From: Pelomyxa schiedti
Taxonomy: Eukaryota > Protista > Evosea
NCBI GenBank assembly: GCA_020536535.1
Contig: JAHLWZ010000799.1
Coordinates: forward strand, 62,001-126,000
Direction of reading: 5' to 3'
Length of the DNA stretch: 64,000 nt
Shown piece after piece: positions 2,764 through 64,000 of the stretch. Below the pieces are notes generated by a model. It ran no database searches. It was not told where the DNA came from and saw only the letters and a program-made list of their open reading frames with translations. Within the stretch, counting starts at the first letter, position 1; each line of letters opens with the position of its first letter. The translations under genes and the position numbers were made by a program.

Positions 2764-4454
2764 ATGGATGGCGAGACACAGGAGCCGCAGCCCAAACGAC
2801 CGCGGGTTGCGTACGCTGCCACGGGGGACCAGAACCAGATACATGCAAGTGGCACCGCAGTGACCTCGTCTTCGTCTTATTTCTCGTCCGCGGCGCCCCT
2901 TGGTGGTGTTGCGGCGACGGCGGCGCGTGGGGCTGCGCCCGCGGACGTGGACGAAGAGGGGCAGGGGCGGCAGGACGGCGCGGACCCAGAGTCAGCCGTG
3001 ATTGTGCTTGACGACGACGACGACGACGACGAAGAAGACGAGGGCTCGGGGTCGGAGGACGAGGAGACCGACACGGGGCGAGATGGGGACCACGGGGACG
3101 ACGGCGACGACGAGGGCGACGCGGCCTCGGACGCGCACGCACCGCGCCGGCACCCAGACCAACCACAGCGGCGGCAGCGCCCGCCGGAACCGGAAACGAG
3201 GGACAGGCGCCGAAGCGCCCGGGAGCACGCGAGGGAGTGGGGGCGAGGCCGGGAGGAGCGAGACCGCAAGAGGCCGAGGGAGGCATCCAGGGGAGGAAGG
3301 AGAGGGGCCAAAGGGGGGGGCAAGGGGCGCAAGAGCGGCGGGAAAAAGGGGATCAAATACACGGGGGGCGCTGGCCCTGCAGCCGCAGCCGCCGCCGCCG
3401 CAAGGGTTCCGCGCAAGGTAGAGCGCCAGCAACGTCGCCGGCGCGAGCGCTGGAGGGTCAGAGAGGAGAGGATCAACAGAGATAGAGAGGCAATGCGGAA
3501 CAACGTGAAGGACGAGAAAGGTCTTAGAGGTGCACAGAAGGACTTGCCAGTGTGCCAGGGCATTTCTGAGTCGCACAGACGACTGGTTCCTCACCTTGGA
3601 TGTGTGACACCTCTTCCAGAACCGCTACCTGCAGAGATTTACTCAAAGGTGCTTGAAGAAGTGTGCAAAACTATGGCGGGTACCAAGTTTGTCCCAGGCG
3701 GCAATGTGCATGAAACTGAGGATAATAGTCCAGTTCGCAAGCCCATTACCAAGCAAGCTCCCCAAGATTGGGACGGAAAACGCCCTAAATGGAACCCATC
3801 CTGTGACAATTCAACTCGATTCCCTGTGTACTTGGAGAAACTTATGGGCATTACTAAGAAGGAGCTGATGGAAGAAATACAAGACAGTGAAAGCACGGAG
3901 CTGCTGCGGCAAATACATCACCTGTGCATCCCCGGCATGGTACCTCTGCCAAAATTGGCTAGAATTCAACGCGTTGTGTTGTGGGATGTTGACAACCTCA
4001 CTGGCGTGTTACCCTGCTTGGACTTTAATTGCGACCCCAACAGTCTTCTTGTCTTGGGATTCGGTACCATCTCGTCCATTGGAAATGTTCCTGATCCTGC
4101 AATTGCACTTGAAATGATGGGCAACAGAAGACTAGCTTTTGTGATGTCTGTACTCATCTCACACAACTATAACTAAAAGTACAACACAGTTGCGAATATG
4201 GCCAGGATGGCGTCGACTTTGTGATGATCAACACAAGTTCGCTACTTCATGAAATGCTTCCACAAGACGTGACAATAACATTCCTTTCCTGCGATAACGA
4301 CTTTGACACAATCTTGCACAGGTTTCCTGGGAGACAGGTGCGTATTGCACAAATGGAAATAAAAACACTAATGTGTGCCCAAGGTAGAACGCTGCTTTCT
4401 CAGAAAGGATGGGACCCTGGGAACCAAACGACTGGTCTAAGCAGAGAGAAATAA
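2764..4454 (+). CDS. PIN/NYN-like nuclease domain protein with acidic and basic low-complexity N-terminus
   Basis: Likely ATG at 2764 (MDGETQEPQPKRPR) inside ORF 2503..4176. An intron at about 4146-4189 joins it to ORF 4221..4454. Motifs VVLWDVDN, DGVDFVM and FLSCDNDF match the PIN/NYN acidic active-site pattern. Confidence 0.6.
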
Positions 4455-7774: not shown

Positions 7775-10700
7775 TTAGGGTTTATCGTTGGTGGTATCGA
7801 CCGGCTGAAGAACGAGTGGGAGAGTGGACTTGACAGGTGGGGGAGGAGGGAGCCCAGAGGCCTGCGTCGACAGTAGTGACCCAATGAGCACCCCGGTGGC
7901 GGCAATGTCATCAGGAATAACGCTGCTGCCATCCGTGGTGGTTGTAGTTGCCGATGTTGGTGCGGAAGTGGATGATGCTGATGTACCACTGGGGGATGCA
8001 GTGGACGTGGAAGTGGAAGAGGTCGTGGATGACGAGGACGAGGATGACGATGCCGACGCCGCAGCTGCAGCGGAGGACATGGAGACGGTGTCGCGCTTGA
8101 AGAGGAATGATGGGTCAACAAACCAGCCAATCATCATGTGGAGGAGGTCCGTCGTTGCCTGCAGGTGGCGCTTGGCCTCGAGGTCTCGTGCGTGGAAGAG
8201 ATTGGGTGCTATTGCGAATGCTGCGTTCGGCGAAGGGGTGGGAAGGGGAGAAGGTGTGTGTTAGGAGAAAACACAATTGATTTGGGTTTCGGGTCTTTCC
8301 ATACCGAGTAATTGCGGGGTCATTTTGTTTACTGCTTGTTTCTTTGCTACTGTAGTTAGCATTCTCATCAGCCACTCTAACACCACTTGGTTAAAGTAGC
8401 TGAGTTTACGGATCGTCTGCAGACATTGCTCTAGACTGTCAATTGAGTCAAGTACTTCGGGCGGGATTTCGTTCAGGAGACCGGTGGGAAGGTTTCGAAA
8501 CCAAACCTGCATACACAATTATGTCACCAATTCGGCTGGATCATCATACTTTGATCAATTGCGCGATATCATGAGGACTTTGTTGCATGGTAGCAACAAA
8601 CTGCCCTCTGTTGGCTAGCTCTTGTAATCTCTTGACTTCGGCGGGATCTCCGGGTTGCATAAATATATTAGGCTGTTGTAAGAGTTACATTTTTTTGAAG
8701 TGATGCTCTTTGATACAGTTTCGAGTCCTTGGTTGTGTATCAAGGCTTTTTTAAATAAGATGAGAACCGCAGGAACCTTTAAGCCTGAGTGGGTGAGATA
8801 CTTCCAACAGAATTGTTGTACACACCAGAGTCTATTTCACGGTTGAGAGACATGGGGTCTACGCCAAAAAGCCCAGCATCCGAACGAATAATAAAATCAA
8901 TAAATTGCTTATCACCAGCTTGGAATAAATATAAGGTTGTATAAACTAGCTGAGGATACTTTACCAATTAAAAGAGGTATTCGAAGGGCAGTGTTCGTTT
9001 TCGAAACGAGGGTAACACTGACTTCCAAAGCCTTTCGTGCTTTCTTGTGATGTCAGAATCAGTAAGAAAATAGGAGACTTAACAGGTTTGATGTTCCCTT
9101 TTGTCTTATTCAAGGAAATGGAAAGATTTCCATCGTCATAGTTCTCGAAAGAGTATTTCAGTTGCGTATCGGTGTTATTGAAGATGTCAAAGCTATGTGT
9201 CACAGGCGTGGCAATTGGGAACGCAGAGGCGCTGAGATCAAAAGATAAGACCTCAGATGGAACCTAGGGGAGTTGGCTATGGAGAAAAGGAAGCTGTTAA
9301 TCTACCAGCCATTTCGGTGCTGCCTCTGAATTTACATCTGTTGTGGTACCTTCATCCTACTCAAAATTCAGAATTAGAGACACTATAAAAGTGCTTACTG
9401 TAACTCCTTGCCCAGTCTCCCAGTTTCCACATGCAGGCTACGCAATTTTAGAAAAGTAATTGATTGGTGATAGCTACCCGCAGCAGCATTGCATGCAATT
9501 GTGCCTCTTCAAGGTCAATCTTGCGCAAACATTCACGTACCTCCAAAATGGTAGGTCGTTTGGCCGGGACACCATGCCAACATGCTCTGTTAATTTCATT
9601 TTAGATCACAGATTAGACACAGTACATACTTTATTAGCTTTGCAAAACTGGCCGATATTGACTTTGGTAGAGTTGGTCTATCTCCTTTTGATACAGCAAC
9701 TGTATCAAAATAATTAATACAATTAAGAATATATCTTCCAAACCTGGAATCGCCCAAGAAGGCTTATCAATATACGGTTGTTGACGCGCAGACATCTCCC
9801 ACATCACTTCAATTAGAGATGAGAAAGGGAAGGTCAACAAAACAAAAGATACAAATGCCAAGAGCATAAATATCAATTTTCTCAGTGTAGCCTTTGTTCT
9901 CTGACAGAATGTTAATACCTCGAGTGAATGCTAGTGAGTAGTACCAAATAATTCAGGTGCCATGTATTGCACTGTACAAAATTACTAAAGGAGGCACACT
10001 GGGAGAGGAAATTACCAGTTCCAAGATTCGCTGTTAAAGCTCCTGTATTATTCACAACTCGGGAATTCCCAAAATCTGAGATTTCTTAGGAGTAACTCTA
10101 GTAGGATAGTGTGCAATACCTATGATCTTTACTTCAAGACTTGCTGTCAGCTGTGATTAGAAAATGAGCAAAAGACTAAGTCAAAGTGGCACAAACCAGA
10201 ACATTTGCGCTAGAAGAGATGAAGCACAAAAGTGTTAGAGAGTTGTTTACAAGTCATTGCAGTACATACGGCTTCACATCCCTAAGGGAAGGTGAGTGTG
10301 TAAAGCAACCAAAATAGCAAACCTGTGAATAACATGATATGAGTGTAGATAAGCGAGCCCTTTGGCAATTCCACTGGCAAAGTGCAAACACACTTTCAAA
10401 TCAATTTCATCTGTGTGGGTAAATTGAATACTCAACAACTTAAAAATATGCAATGGAAATCGCACTTTTTTCAACGTAAGAGCCAAGGCTGAAGGAAAAT
10501 TAAGTTAGCTGCCTCACATTAGGAAGACTAACCTGAAAGGCATCAGCTCTGTCACGATGTAGAGATGGTTGAAGTCTTTTGTACATGCTCCAATGCATGA
10601 AATAAGATTTTCATGGTCAAAAACGCTTTAGATTTTCGTTAATAATGTTCAGAACCGTTTGTTTTTTGTTTTACCTCATTAGAGTGAGCTCTTTTTTAAA

Positions 10701-12305
10701 ATCCTTGATATCAAAAGCCATGTTATCTTCAGAGTAATGTTTGATGGCAACCGTTTGATTATTCCAAACTCCTCTGTATTATTTGTTTGCTTTTGGTTTT
10801 TTTTGAAGAGAAAACTTACTTGTACACCTTTCCAGCAGCACCACGGCCAACCATATCACCCAGAGTGAAGTCAGTGGGGGACAGTTCCTTGTGGTAAGAT
10901 TTTGTTCCTGCGAGAGCCGCAGCAATTACATCATCTAATTGCCTAAGATTATTCTCGGCATTTTTTAGCTCCAAGTCTTCCATTTCTTCTCGAATTTTAT
11001 CCTTGGAAGTATTGTTACATTGTTTTGGGGGAATTTTTGTATTACATACCATTTTCTCGAACTTCTCAAGTGTCTCTTGGAACACAGGGCCTTTCTGCAA
11101 TACAGGTAATTACTTATTTCAATTTTTTTTTGGTATAAACCATTTCAATTAATTGTGACAATTGAACTTGTAACCGGGAGTGATCACGCCAGGAGAAGGA
11201 ACTTTCTGGATTTTTAAAAACACTTTGAAACTTCTATCTGTGTGTTAAATTTTACACTTGGTAGTTGAAATTTTCATTGAAAAATTACCGCAGTATCAGG
11301 TACAGATGTGGGGGTTGAGTGAGCAGTTTCACCAACTCCATTTCCTGGGGGGGCTTCCTTCTGGGCATCCGTGGAAGTTTCAGTATCAATAGAATGGCGG
11401 TGCCTTTGACGTTCAGGGGAAACTGACCGCTTGTTTTTGTGGTGATGGGAACGATGGTATCTGGACTCAGAGGGAGTGCGAGGAGAGCTATCACTGGATT
11501 GCCCTGGTGAAGCAGGTTCCGTAGACTGTGGTTCAACAGGCTCTGTGCCTGTTTTAGCACTGTCTTCGCGCTTCTGTGAAACGCCAGTTGTCACAGGTGA
11601 AGCAGTCATTACAGAGGTGGTGCTTGAATCCACAGAGGCAGCTACAGTAGCTGCAGAACAAAGTTTTTTTGGGGGTAATGGAACATCAGCCGGTTTTTCC
11701 GAAACCGCTGCAGGCATCATTGGGGGAGCAACTCTGCAGCAAACCGGAGAAGCAGAATGTTTTCTCACAAATATCTTGCTAGTATCCGCACTAGGCGGCA
11801 GGGAAGTGGACAACAACACCGAAGAAGAAGAAGAAGCCGCCGTAGAACTGGCTCCCCCGCGATCATTAGGGTTAGTAGCAGTAGTAGTAGCAGTAGACGA
11901 CGGAGGAGGCGACAATGTCCTCCTCCTGCCCCTCTCCTGCGCGGACGCGGGGCCCTTGGCCGCCACCACAACCACGGAGTGCATGCTCGCGGTGGAGTTG
12001 GCGATGCTGAAGCGCATGCTGTTGCGGGCGCGCGGGGGCAGCTTGGCGGGGTCCGCCCCGGTCAGCTCCACGTGCTTGCGCAGGGCCCGCTGGAAGGGCG
12101 TGAGCTGGGCCTCGTCGGTGGCCGCGGCCGCGCTCGGGGCCAGGGAGGCGCAGGAGGAGGAGGTGGAGTCGGCGAGGAGCCCGCGGGCGGCGAGGAAGCT
12201 GTCGTCGGACGTGAAGTGGTTACGCGGGGGCCTCTGGGGCGAGGGGGACCGCCTCGGTGTCCCCGTAAGAGCCGTCAAAGCGGCGCTACTGCGGTCGTGG
12301 GCCAT
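7775..12305 (-). CDS. TKL-group protein kinase fused to an Ig/ASH-like beta domain and a RhoGAP-like domain lacking the arginine finger
   Basis: Low-complexity N-terminus (ORF 11274..12305). Kinase motifs across exons: GRGAAGKVYK, VAIK, HRDVKPANVL, DFGNSR, YMAPELF, YTEKIDIYALG, MWEMSARQQPY, CWHGVPAKRPT. Then a stop-free splice path into PIATPVTHSFDIFNN...LEVSVTL, LFGVDP, LKVPAVL, PNIFMQPG, WFRNLP, NKMTPQLL and IAPNLF; stop at 7775. Confidence 0.75.
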
Positions 12306-24405: not shown

Positions 24406-24505
24406 NNNNNNNNNNNNNNNNNNNNNNNNNNNNNNNNNNNNNNNNNNNNNNNNNNNNNNNNNNNNNNNNNNNNNNNNNNNNNNNNNNNNNNNNNNNNNNN
24501 NNNNN
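24406..24505. other. Scaffold gap (100 N) flanked by a 121-nt duplicated overlap
   Basis: 24285-24405 is repeated at 24506-24626 on either side of the N run. Confidence 0.95.
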
Positions 24506-29496: not shown

Positions 29497-31623
29497 ACTA
29501 CGTTGTGGACACCACCAAATCCAAGTCTTCTCGCAAGAACCGCATTCAACACAAAAAGGGGGGCCGTGCTGGAAAGCCACAGACAGAACGCTGTTTCCAG
29601 AACAAGCCCAAGCGCAAGCAGTGCTTTTTTGACCATAAGTTGCCTCCGGCAGAGCAGCACCCCGTGTCTCACCCGCAGCCCTTGCGCGAGTATGAGCCCT
29701 TGGACGCCTATGCAACCATCACTCGTGCCAAATCGACTCTCGACCGCCACCCATTGCCTGCTCCACCCGTACCCAACGACGGAGACGCGATGATGAGCAA
29801 TACCTGCGCTCTTGGGAATGTGGTTTCTAGTCCAAGCTCTGAAAATAATGGCGCATGTGGTGTCGACCAAGTTGGGGAGGCTGAGCCATCATCCCTTGGT
29901 CCTGTTTCCGATAGTGCTCCTACCTCTGCTCTTCATCGAAGCCAAGCCTCGTTATCTGTTCCTACAGGCCATCAGCGTGATGTTCAACCCCCATTCCAGA
30001 AAAAAGTAAGTGCTTTCATATTTCCCGACTGTTATCACTTATTGTTTACTTGCACATAGATAAGAGTTATTCCTAGATGTGAGCCTTTAATTCAACAAAA
30101 TCTAGCACAAGCATTGGCCCTCCTTTCTCAAGAAGAAGCTGAATGTGAACTAGCATGTAGGAATACACTCGCGGACTTATGTTCTTGTCAAAACAAAGAA
30201 GCAGTAAGCAAAAGCCCAGGTAAGTACAATGGGATATTGAGCTATACTAAACATGGATAAGAGGATCAATTTCCAGACATTTGGACACATATTGAAAAAA
30301 CCACACAGGTTGGTTGGGAAAGAAGATATGAAAAGTTTACACTAACCATCAATAGGCCCTTGATCGTTTTAAAGCGAAGCAAGAACATGGTATTTTTCCA
30401 GTCTTTCTTTTATCTGTTGAAAATCAAGCAGCAGATAAAATTCAAAGTAGGATAGACGAAGAACGAGATAAGCGGCTTGCATCTGAATTAGAGCGTCTAG
30501 TAACAGAGTACCAGTTGGGCCAAATACAGGCGGCCAATGAGAAATTGTCGGCGGATATAGCACAGGTGGAATCATTCTTGGAGAATATGAAAGGGCTGCC
30601 CAAAGAAATTGAAGGTTCTACTCTAGTAACTAGTAATCTGAGGTAACATTACTTGCAGAATTGGAACAAGAAATTGCTGCATTAGAAGAAGAGTGCAACA
30701 CTATAGACCCTAATCAGAAACCCCTTCGTATGGGCTTATGAGGGGCTTCCTTTGCTTATCGATTTCAAACAGAGGTGCTTGAAGCTTCTATGGAGCAAAT
30801 CCGTTCCATTCTTTCATCTACTGCTTCCTCTGTGGATNNNNNNNNNNNNNNNNNNNNNNNNNNNNNNNNNNNNNNNNNNNNNNNNNNNNNNNNNNNNNNN
30901 NNNNNNNNNNNNNNNNNNNNNNNNNNNNNNNNNNNNNGAAACCCCTTCGTATGGGCTTATGAGGGGCTTCCTTTGCTTATCGATTTCAAACAGAGGTGCT
31001 TGAAGCTTCTATGGAGCAAATCCGTTCCATTCTTTCATCTACTGCTTCCTCTGTGGATGGTGCCTCCTGATTTTTCCTTGAAAAAAAAGGCAACTTTCTG
31101 AGTGTGTAAACTTGAAGTCTAAGTAATAGAAAAGTGTGTGACAGAAAGGGAGTGTTTTTTCATCATATTCTTTCTTTCGGAAAATTATTGACATCCTTAA
31201 TAAAGAACTAAGAGCGGAGAAGGAAAAAGCCCAGCGAGTGGAGGCCAAACTTACTGTGGCCAGGAAGTTGTTCTCTGAGTTCTGTGATGTTCTTCCCCAA
31301 GTAGAAAGGAGAATGGAAAAAGAACCAATACTAGGAGGTATTCTTCCTGTTCTTCACACATTAGCGTTAACAGCAATGGAAGAGTTAGTTGAGATAAAAG
31401 CTGCATTGGAGAAGTTAGCCGCATTAAAAGCACAAGATGCTGCCGAGCACCCAAAAACGAGGTAATTTTATCCGATCTTATCACACTGGCATTTAACTCC
31501 CAATAGATGAGTTGAACGCTCTTTACAGCCAAGTATTGGAGGCCCTCACAGGGCAACGACCTCCAGTCAGGACTTTGAGTACCACAACAAGCACTTCACA
31601 TGCCGAAAAGAAGGCCTCTTGAA
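29497..31623 (+). CDS. Spliced hypothetical coiled-coil protein (structure uncertain, spans the second gap, possibly degenerate)
   Basis: ORF 29505..30059, then exons ELEQEIAALEEECNTIDPNQKPL | QVLEASMEQIRS and IIDILNKELRAEKEKAQRVEAKL...KAALEKLAALKAQ. The phase of the last intron does not fit the downstream frame by my count. Confidence 0.4.
30838..30937. other. Scaffold gap (100 N) flanked by a 121-nt duplicated overlap
   Basis: 30717-30837 is repeated at 30938-31058. Confidence 0.95.
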
Positions 31624-53660: not shown

Positions 53661-56600
53661 TCACAGGCCAGGAGGTTGAGCCTCCCTTATAACAGAGCCA
53701 AACTTGTCAGTCACCACCAGGATTGAGAACGCCTTGACCTCTGACAGATCTGCAGCCGCGTCACTCAGCGAGCAATAGTCTGCCCTGCCCCTCAGGTCCG
53801 TGTACAGATCCTTCCAGAACGAAGTATCCCCGCTCGCCAATCTCGCGTACACCTTCACGTAAGCCCCAGGAATTGGCTTTGGCGATTTCGTAGTAACGGT
53901 CGATGTCGGCGTGGCTGAGGAACCACCAGATCCGGACGCAGAAGCCGGCCTCTCCAGGACCTGAAGCTGGCCAACTTGGGGCTGAAGAGACAGCAAAAGT
54001 GAGTTTGCAAAGTACGTGAGGGTCCTCCTCAGTCCTCCAGGGGCGACGACTTCGACGATCAGATTGGAACCGCACAGATTCTCAGGAACAGACACGCAGT
54101 GTGTCTGAACCGGGATCGACGAAGTCGGCGGGGTGAACGTCGGCGAGGCGGCCGCAGCCGAAATTATGGCATCGATTGGATTTGGAAGCTTCACGGTCAG
54201 AACGCTGTTGGGCTTGATGAACATGTTGTTCTTGGACTTGTTGGTGTTGCTGTTGGATTCCGCTGACATGAAGAAGGGCTGGGTGGAGAATAGAAGTTCT
54301 AAGTCCATGACATAGAACCGGAGTTGGAGTTCCACGAGGTTGCAGTAGTCGATTGACACCATTGGCCCGTTGAGGGTAACATCAAGTGACGGGCGGGAAG
54401 TCTGCCAAGTCCGCTCCAGAAGAACCCTCATTCGCTCGGGATCCGGCTTGTTGTCATCATGGGATGCCTCTTTCTTGAGTGCCTTGGTGGCAGAGTCCGC
54501 GGCTCTCTTGGCATCTGTGTCTCCCGCTGCAACTGACATCACGAAGCTGGATGATGCCTCTGCGTGGAACGCCTCTATCTCCTTTACCTGCTCTTCCATA
54601 TCCTTGAATCTCGAGGACCACCGCGACACGGGATAGTCGTGATAGCGCGTGCACATTGCACGAGCAACGGCGGGTACCGAGTCCAAAACCCGGTACTTTT
54701 CATCCATGAAATCAAGGTATGCTGCCATGTAGTCATACTGCATCTGGCAGGAGAACCACCTCAGAGAATCGGCGGGTGCTGCTGGCCCCACAGGATCGGA
54801 GACTGGACTGCTAGCTAGGATGGCGGTAAAGTCCCGTTTCACTGACCCTGGAGTGGTGCTTGGGTTGCCTTGCTTGTCCAGAGTGGGCTGCTTTATTGCC
54901 AGTGTGGCAGATGGTGCAGGTGGGAGCGTTGCAATTCGCTCAAATACGTGGCGGGACTCATCAAGCCTGTCCTGAAGCAGAAGATAGTAGGAGGCAGCCA
55001 TCAATTCCGATGCTGCGGGTGGGTATGGCTCACGAACAAGTACTTCTAGGAAGTTCTTGTACTGTCCAGCAAATTTGCTATTGAGTATTTTCCGGCTCTG
55101 CCCTAGAGTGTGGGCACGAGCGTTGATTAGAGGGGCATATTCAAGATGTTGGTAAAGATGTAAATCTCTTGCTTCGAGAACGAGCAACCGAGAAGAGAAG
55201 GGTGGGTGAATACGGCACCAAGAATTGCCGTTTGGAACAAGTTGAGGCTGAGATAGGAACTCGGCAACTCCCTCAGCATTATAGTAAGCAAATGCCCAGC
55301 TTAGCGAATTGCGATGAATCACATGTCGTTTACGTAGAAGTTCACGGAGCTTATTCCAAAATGGTTCCGATTCTTGGCATCTAAACTGAATCCAGTCAAG
55401 ATTCAAGTTCTGGGGTGTGCTTCGATCGATAAACTCCAGAACTTCTTCGGCAGTGCCACATTGAGATACCCATTCCCATTTAGTTTTATCCACAGGTGGC
55501 TGAGGAACAACTGGTGGTGGAGTGAGAGAAGAAACGACATTAAGCACGAATGGTTCAGCAAAGGCAACCAAATTATTGTCAACACTAACGTGAGCAGGAT
55601 AGTGATTGTACTGCCCAATAGCAGGGAAATAGAAGAAGAAGTCGATCACACTGCCTGAAGAACTAACTTGAACCATTCTAGACTTGGTGTAGTAACCTGC
55701 GGTACCAAGAGGAAGAGCACCTACAGGTATTTGTGTCATCACATCTACTTTCCTCGACTCCTGGGATGTCAATTTCACTGAACAGCCGTACACCTTGTTG
55801 ACTTGGAACTCATGAACAACCCAATAGTCTAGTGTTTCACCTGTGTCATTGTTGGTTTGTTTGCGGAATTGTGGATCAAAGTAGTGTTGTTCGACTGCCA
55901 CCCTCAAGGCAGGGGTAATATTACTAGTTGCTGGAGCCTCCCCCAAATCACGGTAAAAAGCAATCATTGGTTGAGAAGAGGAAATGGTTACACGAGAGGG
56001 GGAAAATTGCATTGAAAGAGGAGGAGCCTTGAATGGGAGGTCAATTAAAGAGAGACCAACCATCTGGTCAACAAAGGTCCCTTTTCCTTGCGTAACAAAG
56101 GTTGGAGTGAGGAAAAATCCGTCACTGTGCTGTTTCCTCTCAAGTTCAAAGAAGTCTGAATTCTTCTCAACAGCCTCAGCCAAAGCAACCCAGAAAGGCG
56201 ATATTTTCACCCTATCCTTCTCATAGGAAAAGGTGTTGAGCTTGTCAAGAGGAACTGGTTGGCTCTGGTAATACTGGGACTCTGCCCACTCTTGCGTTTT
56301 TTCGAGCTGCTTGAAGGTTTGTTGCACTGTTCCGCGTCGAGAAAGGTCGGAAGCAATACGACTTTGCTTTTGCTGCTCCTGTGCACGCAGTTGTTTTCCC
56401 AGTGTCTGCTGCGCCGCCTTCCCTCCAGAGCGAGAAGCAGACGGAGCGGCCGATTTTTTCTTCATCTTCCTGCTGCATTCATAGTCTCGCTCTCTGCATT
56501 TTTCCTCTTTCTTGCATTCTATGTCCAAGGACTTCCTGTAATAACAAAAGGTGAGGGGCAGAAAAATAAAAATTGGGCGTCGCACTTCAAGCTCGGCGAA

Positions 56601-59600
56601 TGAGAAATACTGTTCATCAGGCTAGAGGATGACGATGGGGCTGCACATAAAGATTGCCTACTCATCATCATAGCTCCTGGTGGTGGAGGTGGCGGACCTC
56701 CACCAAAACATGGCGGCGGTGGGGGCGGAGCACCACAGCCAGGTGGTGGGGGCGGCGGCGGCGGCGGCCCACCGGCGCACAAATTCAGTAGTTGTTCTGC
56801 TTCTTCTTCACATTCTTCCGCGTAGCTATCATCGAAGTCGTCCTCCTCTGCTGGAGGAGGTGGGGGAGGGGGCGGTGGTGGCCGAGCTGCTGTGGAATTG
56901 CTTTGGGCAAGCGTTGCCTTGATTGTGTCTGGGTCGAGGCCACCACAAGAAAGTGTGTTCTTGAACAAGATTGGATCGTCTAACTCGGAGATGTTAATTC
57001 CACTCTTGGAGGCTGTTGCCTTCAAGTCATTGACGTGCTGCACGATTGTTGATGTAGGACCCGACCAAGGCCAAGCTCCAAGGCGTTTCATACGGTAATA
57101 CAAAAGTATGCGTTCGAAAATATTGAGGGACTCGAATCGGGAAGGTATAAGGTATCCCATGAGTGCCTTGATGGATAACGCCGCTGCAGCTCTTGCGTAC
57201 ACATCTGCAGATGGATCGGATTCCCAAGAGGCTATGAGCCAATGATCTAACAGCTGTTTCTCCAGCTTCTGTGCAATGTGAGGGCGTACTGCAGTTCTGA
57301 AAAATTCATTGTCTTTGCAGTAAATAAAGAAGTTCAACTCGTGGGATGCGTATTGTGAATAGAGAGTTTTCTTCTCGGAATCAGAAAGTAATCCCCATCT
57401 TGTGACAAACTCAAATGACTGCAACTGAGATGACGCATTGAGAGCAGTAAACAGAGCATGAACTTTGGAAAGTGAGTCATAAAGACCAAGAGTGGCATTA
57501 GTTATGTCTGAAACAACTAGGTATGACCCTGGGAGCATAGAGTTTGTGGCTCGCCTTTCTACCATATGGGAAGATGGGGGAAGGGCAGCAAGAGGCAATA
57601 AACGCAAATCGCGGAAAGGGAAACTGCGCGGAATGAGAGCCTGAGTGAAGGCCTCTTGCTCACGCAGTTTTGCAAGGTTTTCCTCCCTTGTTTCTGCGAT
57701 CTTGGCTGGCAGAGGAAGACGAGGTATAGGAAGGAAACGGCAGTGTACATTTAAGCCATCTACAGCATACACTTGTACAAAGCCTCCTGTGCCCAGAACA
57801 CTGCGGGGAATTGCGATACTGAGAGATTTTCCACTTGGACGAAGGTTTGAAAGTACAGTTGAACTTTCCCATAAGAAATCCACAGAAGACCTATCATCAA
57901 CAGTGCGCAAAACGCGATCTTCACGAGAGCCCATCTTAGCATCACGACGAGCTCCTGAGGACTGAGATGCAAAAGTAGTTCCGTCTTTGGCTGACTGTGT
58001 AGCTGTATCTGTGGCAGAAAGGGCCCATGGGTTGATCAGAAGTGTTGGTTGCCTGTTCATGTTGCCCAGCCTCCTTGACGCTAGCTTTCGGTCTAAGACA
58101 TACCTATACTCCTCACCAAGTATTCTTCCATCAAGGTACTGTGACGCCCGGTTGGTCATTGTGATGACTGAAAGTTCAGGCACAGATGTAACATTTAGAG
58201 CGTCGAAAGCCGAGTACAGAGGCAATAATTGCGTGCATAGAACATGAACGCGGGTATTTTTTGTCAGTGATGATAGTTGAACGTAAAGCCATTCACTATC
58301 TGCTGCTTCGGTATTGGTAACCCTAGGGGTACCCTCTGATGCTGTAGATACACAGGGGGCATTGCGCTCCCATGCTTCTATTGCTGGTGCAGGTACCTCC
58401 GACTTCCTTGCCATACCTGCTTTGACTACAAGTACTGGAATAGCTTGCTGTGTCTCAAGGAATCGTGTGCGCCCAAGGAGGCACTGTGGTTGAGTCACAG
58501 GTGCTACTTCCTCCTCACCTGTAGTACCAGGAGGAGTTGGAGGAATCTCTGTTACACGGATCTGGCAGTGGTGGTCCAACATTGGGTAATACAACTCATA
58601 ATCACCAGGAGAGAGGTTCACGACTTGTAAAGTACTGCGTTGTGGGTCCACAACGAGACACTGAGATACATCAGCTAGATAACTGCCATCTCCAGCCATG
58701 GAAAAGAGAACAGCATTCTGCCTTGGAGGCTGATGCCGCCTATTTTCCACTGGGTCCATAGTAGGATACGGGCAAGCCAGAACCACACCATCAGTTCTTG
58801 CAGCCCCATGTAGTGCTTTAGGAAGAGAAATGAGTGGCTTGTTAAAGACTTGAAGATCCCATCTGGTATTCGAGATTGAGCATTGAACACTTGTGATATA
58901 GTGAAGTTTCCCAAGGTGAATTTTTCCTTCTTGGTCTGTTGACATAGAGACTGAGTTGGTGGAGTTCTTGAAGTAGTGTTGGAAAGTGACCGTAACATTT
59001 TGGAATGGTTTGGGCTCGCCAGTTTTCCCAACAACCAGTAACTCAAAGTTTCCATCATCAGCAATGCGCAGGTGTGGATGTAATGGTACATTTGTGTTCT
59101 GGTTATCAGACTGATTGATGTTACAATTCCATTGCTGCTGCAAATTAATTTTGGCGCCGCTTCCACTACTATGCTGAGTTACTTTCGCTTCCAGTTTGAC
59201 AGTCAGTTGTCTTAAGTCATCAGGAACACGGAAGCTATAGGTAGACTCACGGTCATCAAACAACTCGAATGGCTTGACTGTTTTGACATTGTTGACTCCA
59301 TCTTTGTCAACAGTTGTTGCAGTGAAAACAACATCTTCCAGAATGGTGAGAGGAACAGGTTGGCTGTTAAGATACAGTGCTGCGCGAACAATAACTTGTA
59401 AAGTTGCGTCCTTGATCAGCTGCTCCCTGTCTACAACAAAACCTGCAGCAAGACTATAGGACTCGGAATTGTGTGCGAAATGATCGAGGCAAGCATAATC
59501 TCCTTTTTGTATGACAATTGCACGGTTTGAGTTAGGGGAGGTGGAAAACGGAATGATGATTTCCCCGGTTGGAACAGCAGGGCCTCCTCCTGGTTGAGGT

Positions 59601-62600
59601 GCCAAATCAGAGTATTCATTCCCATCAACATAGACTTTGCATCCAGTTACAACACGATTTTTCTCATCAAGAATGGACAATGCTTGCCCGGCAACAGAAA
59701 CACGCTCAATAAATCGGAATCCACCACGCCGTATAACGGCACGAGAACTTTTTCCTTGTGCAATGAACTCTATCACATACACACCGCGTTGGGACCCAAG
59801 TTCAGGAAAAGCGAACTTTCGCTCCACCCGCTGGAGTGGAGAGACATCATCATATTTGTATTGAGTTTCGAAATTTGGTGCCAGTCCATCAAGATTAATA
59901 TCAGTCGTTATTTCCTCTGTGCTTTGTTTATAGAACGCTTCTGTGTTGATCTCGAATACTTTTACAAGTAGTGATCGGACATTTTTAATAAACACAGAGA
60001 GGGAAATTGGTGTCTCTGGATCAGGGTAGTATTTTGGATTTGATGGCGCAAGCTCCAAATCCACTCTGTCCTGGAGTTGTTGCTGAATGTCACTGGGAAG
60101 GTGCGCTTGTACATCCGGTTTTTGTAGCATCTCAAACCAGACTGCAGGTTTACCTTGCCCACTCAGCAATCGCGTCGTTGCTAAAATACTTCGTAGCCAC
60201 GAGTCTTCAAGAAACTCGTTAAATGCAGTGCCATCATTCTCTGAAGGGTTGATGGAATAGAACTTTTGAATATATGCCCGTAACATCTCTTCTGCATCGC
60301 TGGAAGGTGGGTCGAGATTGGGTATAGAGCAGGCTCCATCATCAAGCGAGGCATACTCCACTGAAGGGGTTTTATTTAACCTCGTTCGCCATTGAGAAGA
60401 CTGGAGATGGGTGGTACTATCGCTTCGAGGAATAGCAATAAACTCACGGAAGCGTGCCCAATTAAGTTGATCTGCGCTCCTCTCGGCCTCAAGCCAGTGG
60501 TAAAGAATAAGTGCCTGAAGGCTTATGTACTGGACAGAGCATGGATCAGGTGCGCGCTTTTTGCAGTCTTTCACAAAATTGTATATTGCCTCGAAATAGG
60601 GTCGCTTCTGAGAGAAATCAAGAGTTGACCAACCGCCAAGATCCGCGTTGGGTAGTAATTTTCCGAGATAGCAAGTCACAAAGTGCGATGAAGAGAAAAG
60701 GTACTGCCCATAGACACGGTGCGCCATGAAGTCTTGGAGGGTTTTCAGTGTGAACATTCTTTGGTACGACTTCAGGGCTTGATGGACTGTGCGGCACCGA
60801 GTATTCTCGGCATTAATCTTGAAATCTTCTAGAGTTTGTCCGTGATAGTTCTTTTGGGCTACTACTGTCTCGTGGTGAGATATAGATTGAGCAATTTCCC
60901 GGAATCTGAAATCCAAGTAACTTTTTTTTTTTTCTGTTAGAAGACATAAGCAAAGAGTATGATTTACCCAATCAGCACATTTAAGAACTCGGGCTGCCCG
61001 GGGTGTGTATAATGTGAGAGAGTATCACTGAGAAGGGACTTTTCAAGGTGACCAGAGATCATCCCTATTTTCAACAAAGTCAAAGTTAAGGAACGTTAAA
61101 CAATAAATTGGCTACCAAGCCACCAAGCTGTGGATGAGTTTTTGGCCAGGAAGCTCAATGATGGGTTATGGTGAGAACTTGACTCCAACTCAGAGGCAAA
61201 ACTTTTGGGAATTTCTCCATTAAAGAGGTTTGCTTCCGCGGCAATCAGTGATTGATCAAGTTTAGTGGTGTAGGATGGGGATGTGGGAATATAAGGGGAA
61301 GGCCTGGAAGGAGATTAGTTTCTCCTTATGAAAAAAAAAGGGGGTCAAACGATGGCCAAGTTAATCCTCTTTTTTCTTTTGGTGTCCACAGCGAGTCATT
61401 TTTAAACCTATATATTTTCTTTAGTGGTAAACAAAATCTAGTCGAGAAGACAGCACCATGACGAGAAGTGACTGTGCAACTTGGTAATTGGTCCATGTTT
61501 CTTCTTTCTCTCTGGTGGGTAATTCATGAAAGCAGCAATTTTTCCGAGAAAAATCATGGACTCTTCTCTGGACATCTAATACAGTTAAAAGGTGGGGAGG
61601 GTAGTGGAACAAACCATATTTGCGTCAAATCTTCCAAATCTGGCCCGCCACTGCAATTCGCGGTATCTTTCTCCTTTCCCAAATTGGGAAAAGCAAGTCA
61701 TGAACTCCTTCCTGAAAAAAAAATAAGGAAGAACTCTCAAAGGATATTCCACAACCAACGAGGCCCTCCAGTACCCTTCGAAGTATGCAATAATTGCAGT
61801 CCAGTAAAAAAGAACCTAAAATACTTAACCGTGAAAAGAGAAACAACTAGACTCACAGCTGTTCACTTCCAGGTGTTGCCAAAGATAGGGCATCAGTTCT
61901 CGAAGGGGAAAGGGCAAACGTTCTTTTGGGTACACAAAAAAAAAAAAATTAGTTGCAGGAAAACCTCAACCTAGGAAAAAAGCATACTCTAGGAAACCAT
62001 AAGGGGATCTTGATGGGTCAATCTCCTCAAATGCACCCGAAGTGGGAGGAATAAGTGGTGTAAAACTCTGAGCTCCATAAAGGGGAACAACAACTATTTT
62101 TTTTGGGGAGGAAGAAAAAAAAAATTCGTCAGTCACTGGAAAAGCTGATTTGGAAACTAAGCTTACCAACTGGAGGAGGAGTGGTGGAAGTCGACGTTAC
62201 TTCCGGCTTTGCAGTTGGAATAGGAAGAACTTCCGCTTTTGCTTGATTGAAACATCCCTCACATACATCATACTGGCAGGGATCGCAATGCCAAACCTAC
62301 AGACCCATAAGTACAAATTTATGGCAATAACTGGTAGGTGAGAGTGTGTAGTAGTAGTATTATTAGGTGGCTTAGAATGGTAACGGGTGAAGAAAGGGGA
62401 AAAAAAAGAAAAAAAAAAAATTACCGGAATCTCCTTGCCGACTTTTTTACACAGGTCGCACTGCCAACCGGCTTTATACTGCGGGATGACAAGTGACAAC
62501 TCGTGCTCATGGGAGGGGTGTGTGCCCTTGGGCGTCTTCTTGTGCCTCGAGTGGTGGTGCCCATGCGACGACCCCGTGCTCGTGCTGTTGTCGGCCGGAG

Positions 62601-62790
62601 GGGGCGTCGTAGTCGTCGTGGTTGTGCTGCTGCCGCCGCCGCCGGTGGTGGTGGTCGTTGTCGACGCCGCGGGGTCGTCGCGGTGGGGCTGCGGTGGCGT
62701 AGTGGGCTGCTCGGCGGCGGGCTTGGAGCTGCCCCCTTTGCCCTTGTCGTTGCCACCTTTGTCCTTCTTCTTGCCAAACACGTTGAGCAT
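53661..62790 (-). CDS. Giant protein (about 2,700-2,800 aa) resembling large bacterial/oomycete hypothetical proteins with macroglobulin-like beta domains; N-terminal Cys/His zinc module
   Basis: ORFs 56519..60916 and 53661..56585 are joined by an intron of about 50 nt (SLK | KSLDIE). Small 5' exons are traceable to the ATG at 62790. Motifs: GFLE | TFALSPSRTDAL..PGSE, IKNVRSLLVKVFEIN, DINLDGL, RGVYVIEFIAQGKSSRAVIRRG, YGCSVKLT, QIPVGALP, FFFYFP, YVKVYAR, KDLYTDLRGRADY. Confidence 0.75.
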
Positions 62791-63090
62791 TGTTGTGTGT
62801 GTCGGTTGAGGAGGAGGGTTTTTTTTGTGTGTGTGGTTCTTTTTTGTTTGGTTTGTTTGTTTGAATTTGGGTTTGGAGAATTGTTCGTTGAGCGGTTTTC
62901 GACTGCATTTGAAGAGTGCAACGTTTTCCAGCAATGGAAAACAAAAACCCCTCCATAGTGGTGTTCTTGGTCGAAAGTAAGTGGTACCAATTGGCACTAG
63001 GACCAAGCAAACAAGATTGGCCAAGGTGGTAGCGGTCCAAATTTCGCTTCGGATCTCTGCGGTTTGAGAAGCGAAAAAAACTCCGTGGCG
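62791..63090. promoter_or_regulatory. Probable bidirectional promoter between the giant gene (-) and the NifU-FdhD gene (+)
   Basis: A 300-nt spacer between two divergent ATGs, with T/G-rich tracts (tttgtttggtttgtttg) like those upstream of other genes here. No specific motif identified. Confidence 0.4.
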
Positions 63091-64000
63091 ATGGGTAAGG
63101 CGTCGTTGGTGTCGCCGGATCTGTGGGGGATGTATTCGAGAAAACTGGTGCAACGTGGGTATACACTTGAGCGTTAGATCTGCGGCTGTGTGGTAGCGAC
63201 TTACGTGGTCTTCGTTTTTCTCTCTGGCAGGTTTGTTGCACCCGACTCGATGCGGAGACATCGAATTTCCACCAACCGCAGTTGGATCTGATTCTGTTGT
63301 TGTTACTCACGCAACCAACCCTGACGCCTTTATGGTCGTACGCGCGTCTGTGGGTGGAAAATCTTGCGGCGACGAAATTGCTTTGTCACTTCTTATTGAC
63401 CGTTCCAACCACCGCATATTGGATTCGAAATTCCGAAGCTTTGGCTGCGGTTTCTCTATTATCTGCATGGTGTAAATGTAACTCATTTAAGGGGTTGCTA
63501 TTGCCGCCAGCGATATGATTGCGGAACTTTGTATTGGAAAGACTGTGGATGAAGCTCTCTTGGTTTGTTACCTTCATAAAACCCACCTACATGCTTAATT
63601 ACACGTACTTTGGCAGATTACAAATCCATCAGTGGAAGCGGCACTAAGAGATACACCCGATACACCTTCCATGCCATCTAAGAGGCTACAATGTAGTGTT
63701 CTTGCCAGTTCAGTTATTCGCAATGCTGTTGCTCAATACAAAGGTTTGCAACTTTAAACATTGCTTGTATATAAAAGCCCATGCTAGGTATTTCTGTAAG
63801 TGACTTAGATGGAAGTTCGGATGTATGCCGATCGAATCCTTTTGGTGATGGCGAAGTAAATAAACCTTTCAAAAAAAAAAGTGTTTTCAAATGGACAAGC
63901 TCCGGACTTGTTGAACAAAACATTGATATCATTGTTGAAAAAGCACTTGAGATACATGTCAATGGAAAGGCGTAAGTAACCTAAATCCTACAAAGGAAGA
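63091..64000 (+). CDS. NifU N-terminal (IscU-like) Fe-S scaffold domain fused to a probable FdhD/NarQ sulfurtransferase; 3'-partial
   Basis: Exons 63091-63154, 63231-63449, 63492-63562, 63617-63743 and 63788-63971, all GT-AG and phase-consistent. They give MGKASLVSPDLWGMYSRKLVQRLLHPTRCG...GKSCGDEIALSLLIDRSNHRILDSKFRSFGCGVAIAASDMIAELCIGKTVDEALLITNPSVEAALRDTPDTPSMPSKRLQCSVLASSVIRNAVAQYKGISVSDLDGSSDVC...KWTSSGLVEQNIDIIVEKALEIHVNGK. All three scaffold Cys are present. The last segment resembles the FdhD N-terminus. Confidence 0.8.

Follow-up and report, generated by a model that had tools for sequence, protein, structure and literature searches.

A NifU-FdhD fusion gene of Pelomyxa schiedti: exon-intron structure, a metagenomic orthologue and a candidate sulfur relay for formate dehydrogenase maturation

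The Fe-S scaffold protein IscU docks on the desulfurase IscS. The same desulfurase also serves a molybdoenzyme maturation factor: E. coli FdhD reportedly takes persulfide sulfur from IscS, sulfurates the bis-pyranopterin cofactor with it, and is needed for FdhF activity (Thome et al. 2012). FdhF-type enzymes carry, besides this cofactor, a [4Fe-4S] cluster. SufU-type sulfur-relay proteins are set apart by some 18-21 extra residues, inserted between the second and third Cys, and by the loss of the His. A protein that combines a NifU-type domain with FdhD has been described in the anaerobic amoeba Pelomyxa schiedti, where Pelo_10620 was amplified from cDNA and its GFP fusion localised to yeast mitochondria (Zahonova et al. 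2022, PMC8887013). The protein carries a predicted targeting sequence (PMC8887013, PMC10711303) and lies on a long branch in the published tree (PMC8887013); the authors themselves warn against relying on yeast as a heterologous host for localisation (PMC8887013). P. schiedti has seven copies of NifS as well as Pelo_718, a homologue of FdhF (PMC8887013). A NifU+FdhD fusion in the Mastigella eilhardi transcriptome is reported in PMC10711303, and a third NIF branch, activating formate dehydrogenase, has already been proposed (PMC10711303).

The window, which is the whole 64,000-nt stretch of P. schiedti DNA analysed here, ends inside a plus-strand gene for which the original prediction, made from the letters alone, was a complete NifU_N domain running in frame into an FdhD-like sulfurtransferase. 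Reading of the window DNA gives a 221-aa open frame from five spliced exons (63091-63971), and the spliced model reproduces both the consistent phase of the exons and the GT donor at 63972 that had been foreseen. Exon 1 (63091-63154) supplies the start codon and the 21 N-terminal codons plus one base (MGKASLV...KLVQ-R), and is followed by intron 1 (63155-63230; 76 nt, phase 1). The first half of NifU_N is encoded by exon 2 (63231-63449), which contains SCGD (Cys and Asp) and FGCG (second Cys), the Gly codon of the latter being split by intron 2 (63450-63491; 42 nt, phase 1). Exon 3 (63492-63562; VAIAASDMIAELCIGKTVDEALL) encodes the middle of the domain, intron 3 (63563-63616) comprises 54 nt in phase 0, and exon 4 (63617-63743) completes NifU_N and contributes LQCSV, in which the third Cys is found; all three of these motifs were found as they had been described. 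Intron 4 (63744-63787; 44 nt, phase 1) lies exactly where it had been placed. The single unbroken exon 5 (63788-63971) then encodes the linker (ISVSDLDGSSDVC...NKPFKKK) and the start of FdhD (...LVEQNIDIIVEKALEIHVNGK) without a stop. Introns 1-4 are all of the GT..AG type (4/4). The frame ends at a GTAAGT donor at 63972 (phase 2), which splits an Ala codon after NGK, and the remaining 29 nt of the window (63972-64000) are the beginning of intron 5. The FdhD domain begins at about residue 185-195, and about 28 of its residues lie inside the window; the remainder of the gene, about 240 FdhD codons, lies beyond the window end.

Upstream of the fusion gene lies a divergent neighbour on the minus strand (62200-62790), with about 300 bp of intergenic DNA (62791-63090) between the two. 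The neighbour encodes 197 aa with low-complexity runs of Thr, Gly and Pro and, at the C-terminus, a segment rich in Cys and His; it has no Pfam match. At 53661-60916 on the minus strand, two very long intron-free ORFs (974 and 1465 aa) overlap at their ends and have no Pfam match at E 0.001. Two runs of exactly 100 N, representing scaffold gaps, are present at 24406-24505 and 30838-30937. Pfam analysis of ten large ORFs of the window revealed no NifS, FdhF or cofactor-synthesis gene, the sole match being an ankyrin-repeat protein.

The 221 residues encoded in the window are identical to the start of Pelo_10620, the protein that Table S2 of PMC8887013 gives under the name "NifU+FdhD" and that is printed again in PMC10711303. 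The forward cloning primer published for that gene, Pelo10620-F (ATGGGTAAGGCGTCGTTGGTG), has one site in the window, at 63091-63111 in exon 1. The identical residues and the primer site at 63091 together equate the window gene with Pelo_10620. The reverse primer has no target in the window, as expected of a gene that runs past its end, and the Ala that follows NGK in Pelo_10620 agrees with the partial codon GC| left in front of the 63972 donor. Judged from these sequence matches, the window gene is very probably the 5' half of Pelo_10620, with NifU_N, a linker of about 35 residues and a complete FdhD/NarQ domain encoded in one spliced frame. A single mRNA, as anticipated, is confirmed by the authors' cDNA amplification, which used primers at the first and last codons, the forward one at 63091.

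The NifU_N half was assigned by running Pfam exon by exon, the scores thus referring to single exons and not to the spliced protein as a whole. Exons 2, 3 and 4 match NifU_N (PF01592; cut-off 22 bits, profile length 127) consecutively, at profile positions 25-61, 64-84 and 86-121, with 33.6 bits for exon 2 alone, and the predicted domain is thereby recovered over positions 25-121. The NCBIfam models for NifU, IscU and SufU match the window gene weakly, SufU scoring below the other two.

The FdhD half is less readily recognized from the window. Exon 5 alone gave no match in Pfam, NCBIfam or PDB. On an FdhD profile of our own, built from 80 sequences (79 prokaryotic FdhD ORFs and E. coli FdhD), it scores 9.3 bits over profile positions 7-42, a value reached by none of 5000 shuffles of the exon (best shuffle 4.5 bits), and the FdhD-like signal therefore exceeds what composition would give. 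The FdhD start in the window is real, but weak taken alone. In the published protein, the residues after ...HVNGK continue with AYSVTMRTPP..., TSCGLCGKHS and EDVGRHNAMDKA (also given as EDVGRHNAMDKAIG; Table S2, PMC8887013), and the FdhD assignment of Pelo_10620 itself comes from the authors' InterProScan analysis and from the motifs in the printed sequence (PMC8887013).

The second line of evidence is an orthologue found in public metagenomes. An HMMER search with exon 2 against 1.84 billion representative proteins, among which the Pelomyxa protein itself is absent, returned seven matches. One of them, P0002, a 95-aa fragment with 58% identity, led to the orthologue; the other six were repetitive or low-complexity proteins (e.g. 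P0004) and were discarded. The exon-5 ORF has no exact entry in the assembly index. A 627-kb contig of an ENA metagenome (ERZ21831265:ctg81988l, hereafter L001) carries P0002 as a called ORF, which is also present on a Logan contig (L002, ERR12015701). On L001, a NifU_N ORF is followed by an FdhD-NarQ ORF on the same strand, and a gene model built from the DNA joins them in nine exons (9969-11680, followed by a stop codon) that encode 460 aa in one frame; the eight intervening introns measure 35-46 nt, and one has GC..AG boundaries. The last exon of this model scores 146 bits on PF02634 (profile 102-236 of 237) and matches the E. coli FdhD structure 4PDE with E 3.7e-22. Residues 195-457 align to E. 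coli FdhD 29-275 with 32% identity (E 7e-36), and on our own FdhD profile the protein reaches 241 bits over residues 181-459. The CxxC pair of FdhD is retained in the part of the gene that lies outside the window, TSCGLCG of L001 aligning to TGCGVCG of E. coli (Cys121/Cys124) and Pelo_10620 having TSCGLCGKHS; the EDVGRHNA motif is likewise kept in the FdhD domain of the fusion. The check proposed for the downstream part, a PF02634 match together with the catalytic Cys residues, is thus passed by the orthologue. Continuation into FdhD, and not into the alternative of Fer2_BFD and Nfu, is borne out by the motifs of Pelo_10620 and by the single frame of L001 that runs into a full FdhD-NarQ domain. 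The nature of the FdhD-like piece at the window end is settled, as a domain assignment made from sequence, by the published protein and the orthologue.

Gene structure and sequence conservation connect the two genes. The positions and phases of the four complete window introns recur in L001, as does the donor after NGK-A that opens intron 5, and the C-terminus encoded by the Pelo_10620 reverse primer (...HPHRIVM) resembles that of the L001 model (...HPQRIHTA). At the site of window intron 4, the L001 intron (10548-10588) is of the GC..AG type, versus GT..AG in P. schiedti. An additional 43-nt intron in L001 (10744-10786) splits the FdhD start and has no counterpart in the window gene. Over 210 aligned codons, amino-acid identity between the window protein and that of L001 is 57%, rising to 70% in the NifU_N core. 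Values of pN are 0.22-0.46, against a pS of about 0.9; with synonymous sites saturated, pN is reported against pS and no dN/dS ratio is given. By this comparison, the fusion, including its linker, is evidently under purifying selection in two distant organisms. L001 probably derives from another pelomyxid amoeba, so that a public metagenome assembly contains a large part of the genome of such an organism.

These data bear on the possibility that adjacent short nifU and fdhD genes were wrongly joined by annotation or assembly. Such an artefact would be compatible with the fact that the window stops short of the body of FdhD. It is at odds with the linker and FdhD start sharing one exon without a stop, with the amplification from cDNA between first and last codons (PMC8887013), with the same in-frame arrangement and common intron positions on L001, an independent contig of long-read style, and with the presence of the fusion in the Mastigella eilhardi transcriptome as reported in PMC10711303. 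A joining artefact, which we consider extremely improbable, is ruled out on these four grounds.

The residues of the NifU_N half give indications of its function. Of the IscU cluster site, the window gene has all three Cys together with the Asp that follows the first of them (SCGD, FGCG, QCSV), and L001 keeps the same residues. The residue corresponding to IscU His105 in E. coli IscU structures is a Gln in the window gene, encoded by exon 4 (KIHCSILA in IscU versus RLQCSVLA), an Arg in L001 (exon 10421-10547), and a His in Pelo_19958, the canonical NifU of P. schiedti. The loss of His105 hints that the NifU_N of the fusion may no longer bind a cluster in the usual way. Derivation from a SufU-type relay protein was considered and rejected: the His is lost, as in SufU, but the SufU insertion is missing, the spacing between second and third Cys being 50 residues. 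Because this spacing equals that of Pelo_19958, the domain is a NifU derivative and not of the SufU type.

The retained ligands are relevant to the main rival of the sulfur-relay model discussed below, namely that the fusion is a bifunctional FdhF maturase, in which NifU_N would build the [4Fe-4S] cluster of FdhF while FdhD sulfurates its Mo/W cofactor, a single protein thereby providing both prosthetic groups. Preservation of the three Cys and the Asp in both orthologues fits such a role, as do the status of the NifU_N core as the best conserved part of the protein (70% identity) and the presence of a cluster of this kind in FdhF-type enzymes. The replacement of His105 by Gln or Arg in the fusion, with His kept in Pelo_19958, argues mildly against it, and the fusion no longer has the BFD and Nfu domains of NifU. 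On this evidence, we regard a bifunctional maturase as unlikely.

The Fer2_BFD and Nfu (CxxC) domains are absent from the fusion, both Pelo_10620 and L001 having after NifU_N only the linker and then FdhD. The first linker residues (GISVSDLDGSSDVC) resemble by eye the residues with which BFD begins in Pelo_19958 (GASVNSLEDEDIVCEC), which suggests that the ancestral NifU may have been broken just inside BFD and that the linker may be a remnant of the BFD start. A plausible course of events is that a duplicate archamoebal NifU gene lost BFD and Nfu just past the first BFD residues, and that the truncated duplicate was fused to an FdhD of bacterial origin. Among prokaryotes, the 80 nearest FdhD loci, drawn from contigs of one genome per species and distributed over many phyla, have 35-51% identity, and in none of the 80 is a NifU_N domain fused upstream. 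Within this sample of 80 prokaryotic loci, the fusion looks like a eukaryotic invention.

One of these 80 loci, on a Desulfobacterales MAG contig (JAFGES010000016.1, L062), has an IscU/NifU_N-like ORF (3396-3680) that is convergent with the FdhD gene and directly follows it. It has 28% identity (E 4e-6) and is the sole NifU_N neighbour in the set.

The preferred reading of the fusion is a sulfur relay. By analogy with the docking of IscU on IscS, NifU_N would dock on a NifS-type desulfurase, for which the additional NifS paralogues of Pelomyxa are the probable candidates, and would take or channel its persulfide sulfur. The sulfur would then move to the FdhD Cys pair, and FdhD would sulfurate the Mo/W-bis-pyranopterin cofactor before its insertion into FdhF (Pelo_718). 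We assign a probability of about 50% to this route from NifS through NifU_N and FdhD to the FdhF cofactor. The idea that NIF machinery may feed FdhD and so activate FdhF is the same hypothesis as that of PMC8887013 and PMC10711303, and it agrees with the original prediction, in which NifU_N would dock on the desulfurase or relay sulfur to FdhD. A more specific version holds that NifU_N, having lost the His105 ligand but kept its three Cys, would be a persulfide relay docked on one of the lineage-specific extra NifS paralogues and no longer an Fe-S scaffold, forming a dedicated eukaryotic line from NifS through NifU_N and FdhD to the Mo/W cofactor that would have arisen within Pelomyxidae. The placement of its origin there, and not in a bacterial donor, follows from the lack of a fusion among the 80 nearest prokaryotic FdhD loci. 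This version is offered tentatively, as a possible but somewhat unlikely one. Weighing against the relay model, molybdenum cofactor synthesis genes are not mentioned in PMC8887013 or PMC10711303, and a literature search for Pelomyxa and molybdenum cofactor returned nothing.

Localisation is a complication for the sulfur-relay model. FdhF and the NifS copies tested have no targeting signal or are cytosolic, versus the yeast mitochondrial localisation of the fusion (PMC8887013), and given this mismatch the donor, relay and client may not share a compartment. The same observations lend themselves to a different account, in which the fusion would serve, inside the mitochondrion-related organelle, a client that is not FdhF, or would carry sulfur more generally, with FdhD repurposed. 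Its predicted targeting sequence and mitochondrial localisation in yeast, together with an FdhF that has no targeting sequence, would agree with this (PMC8887013, PMC10711303). The conservation of the FdhD Cys pair and of EDVGRHNA, the co-occurrence of an FdhF homologue in P. schiedti, and the authors' own warning about yeast localisation (PMC8887013) speak against it, and we consider organellar action on another client improbable.

Publications of 2022 and 2023 already cover the gene with its domain architecture and transcript, where its product localises in a heterologous host, and the hypothesis on its function, and the window gene itself is therefore no discovery. A caveat attached to the original prediction, that such a fusion might have been mentioned in earlier Pelomyxa genome work, was correct: the fusion was published in 2022-2023. 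What is newly added is the genomic exon-intron model, the metagenome-derived third orthologue with its conserved intron positions, the variability of the His105 position, and the survey of nearest prokaryotic FdhD loci, which are without the fusion. The His105 change, the Cys spacing, the BFD-like linker and a prokaryotic-locus survey are absent from the text of PMC8887013 and PMC10711303.

Among known systems, the published Pelo_10620 and the Mastigella eilhardi NifU+FdhD protein share with the window gene both the architecture and the proposed FdhF-activating role. The L001 orthologue has NifU_N, linker and FdhD in one frame, and keeps the Cys and Asp residues of NifU_N as well as the CxxC pair of FdhD. 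It differs in having Arg in place of Gln at the His105 position and in being without an 11-residue stretch in the N-terminal part (exon 2). Canonical archamoebal NifU (Pelo_19958) and bacterial NifU and IscU have the NifU_N fold signature in common with the fusion, whereas the Fer2_BFD and Nfu domains of canonical NifU are missing from it and Gln or Arg takes the place of the His that precedes the third Cys. To our knowledge, this is the sole reported eukaryotic case in which Fe-S assembly machinery is fused to a maturation factor for molybdo- or tungsto-enzymes. The C-terminal domain of the fusion, as seen in the L001 alignment, corresponds to residues 29-275 of E. coli FdhD (b3895, 4PDE; PF02634) and keeps EDVGRH. 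The E. coli protein (277 aa) stands alone and obtains its sulfur from free IscS, whereas in the fusion its first 28 or so residues are replaced by the linker and NifU_N, an arrangement that hints at a bacterial-style activation of formate dehydrogenase in an anaerobic amoeba.
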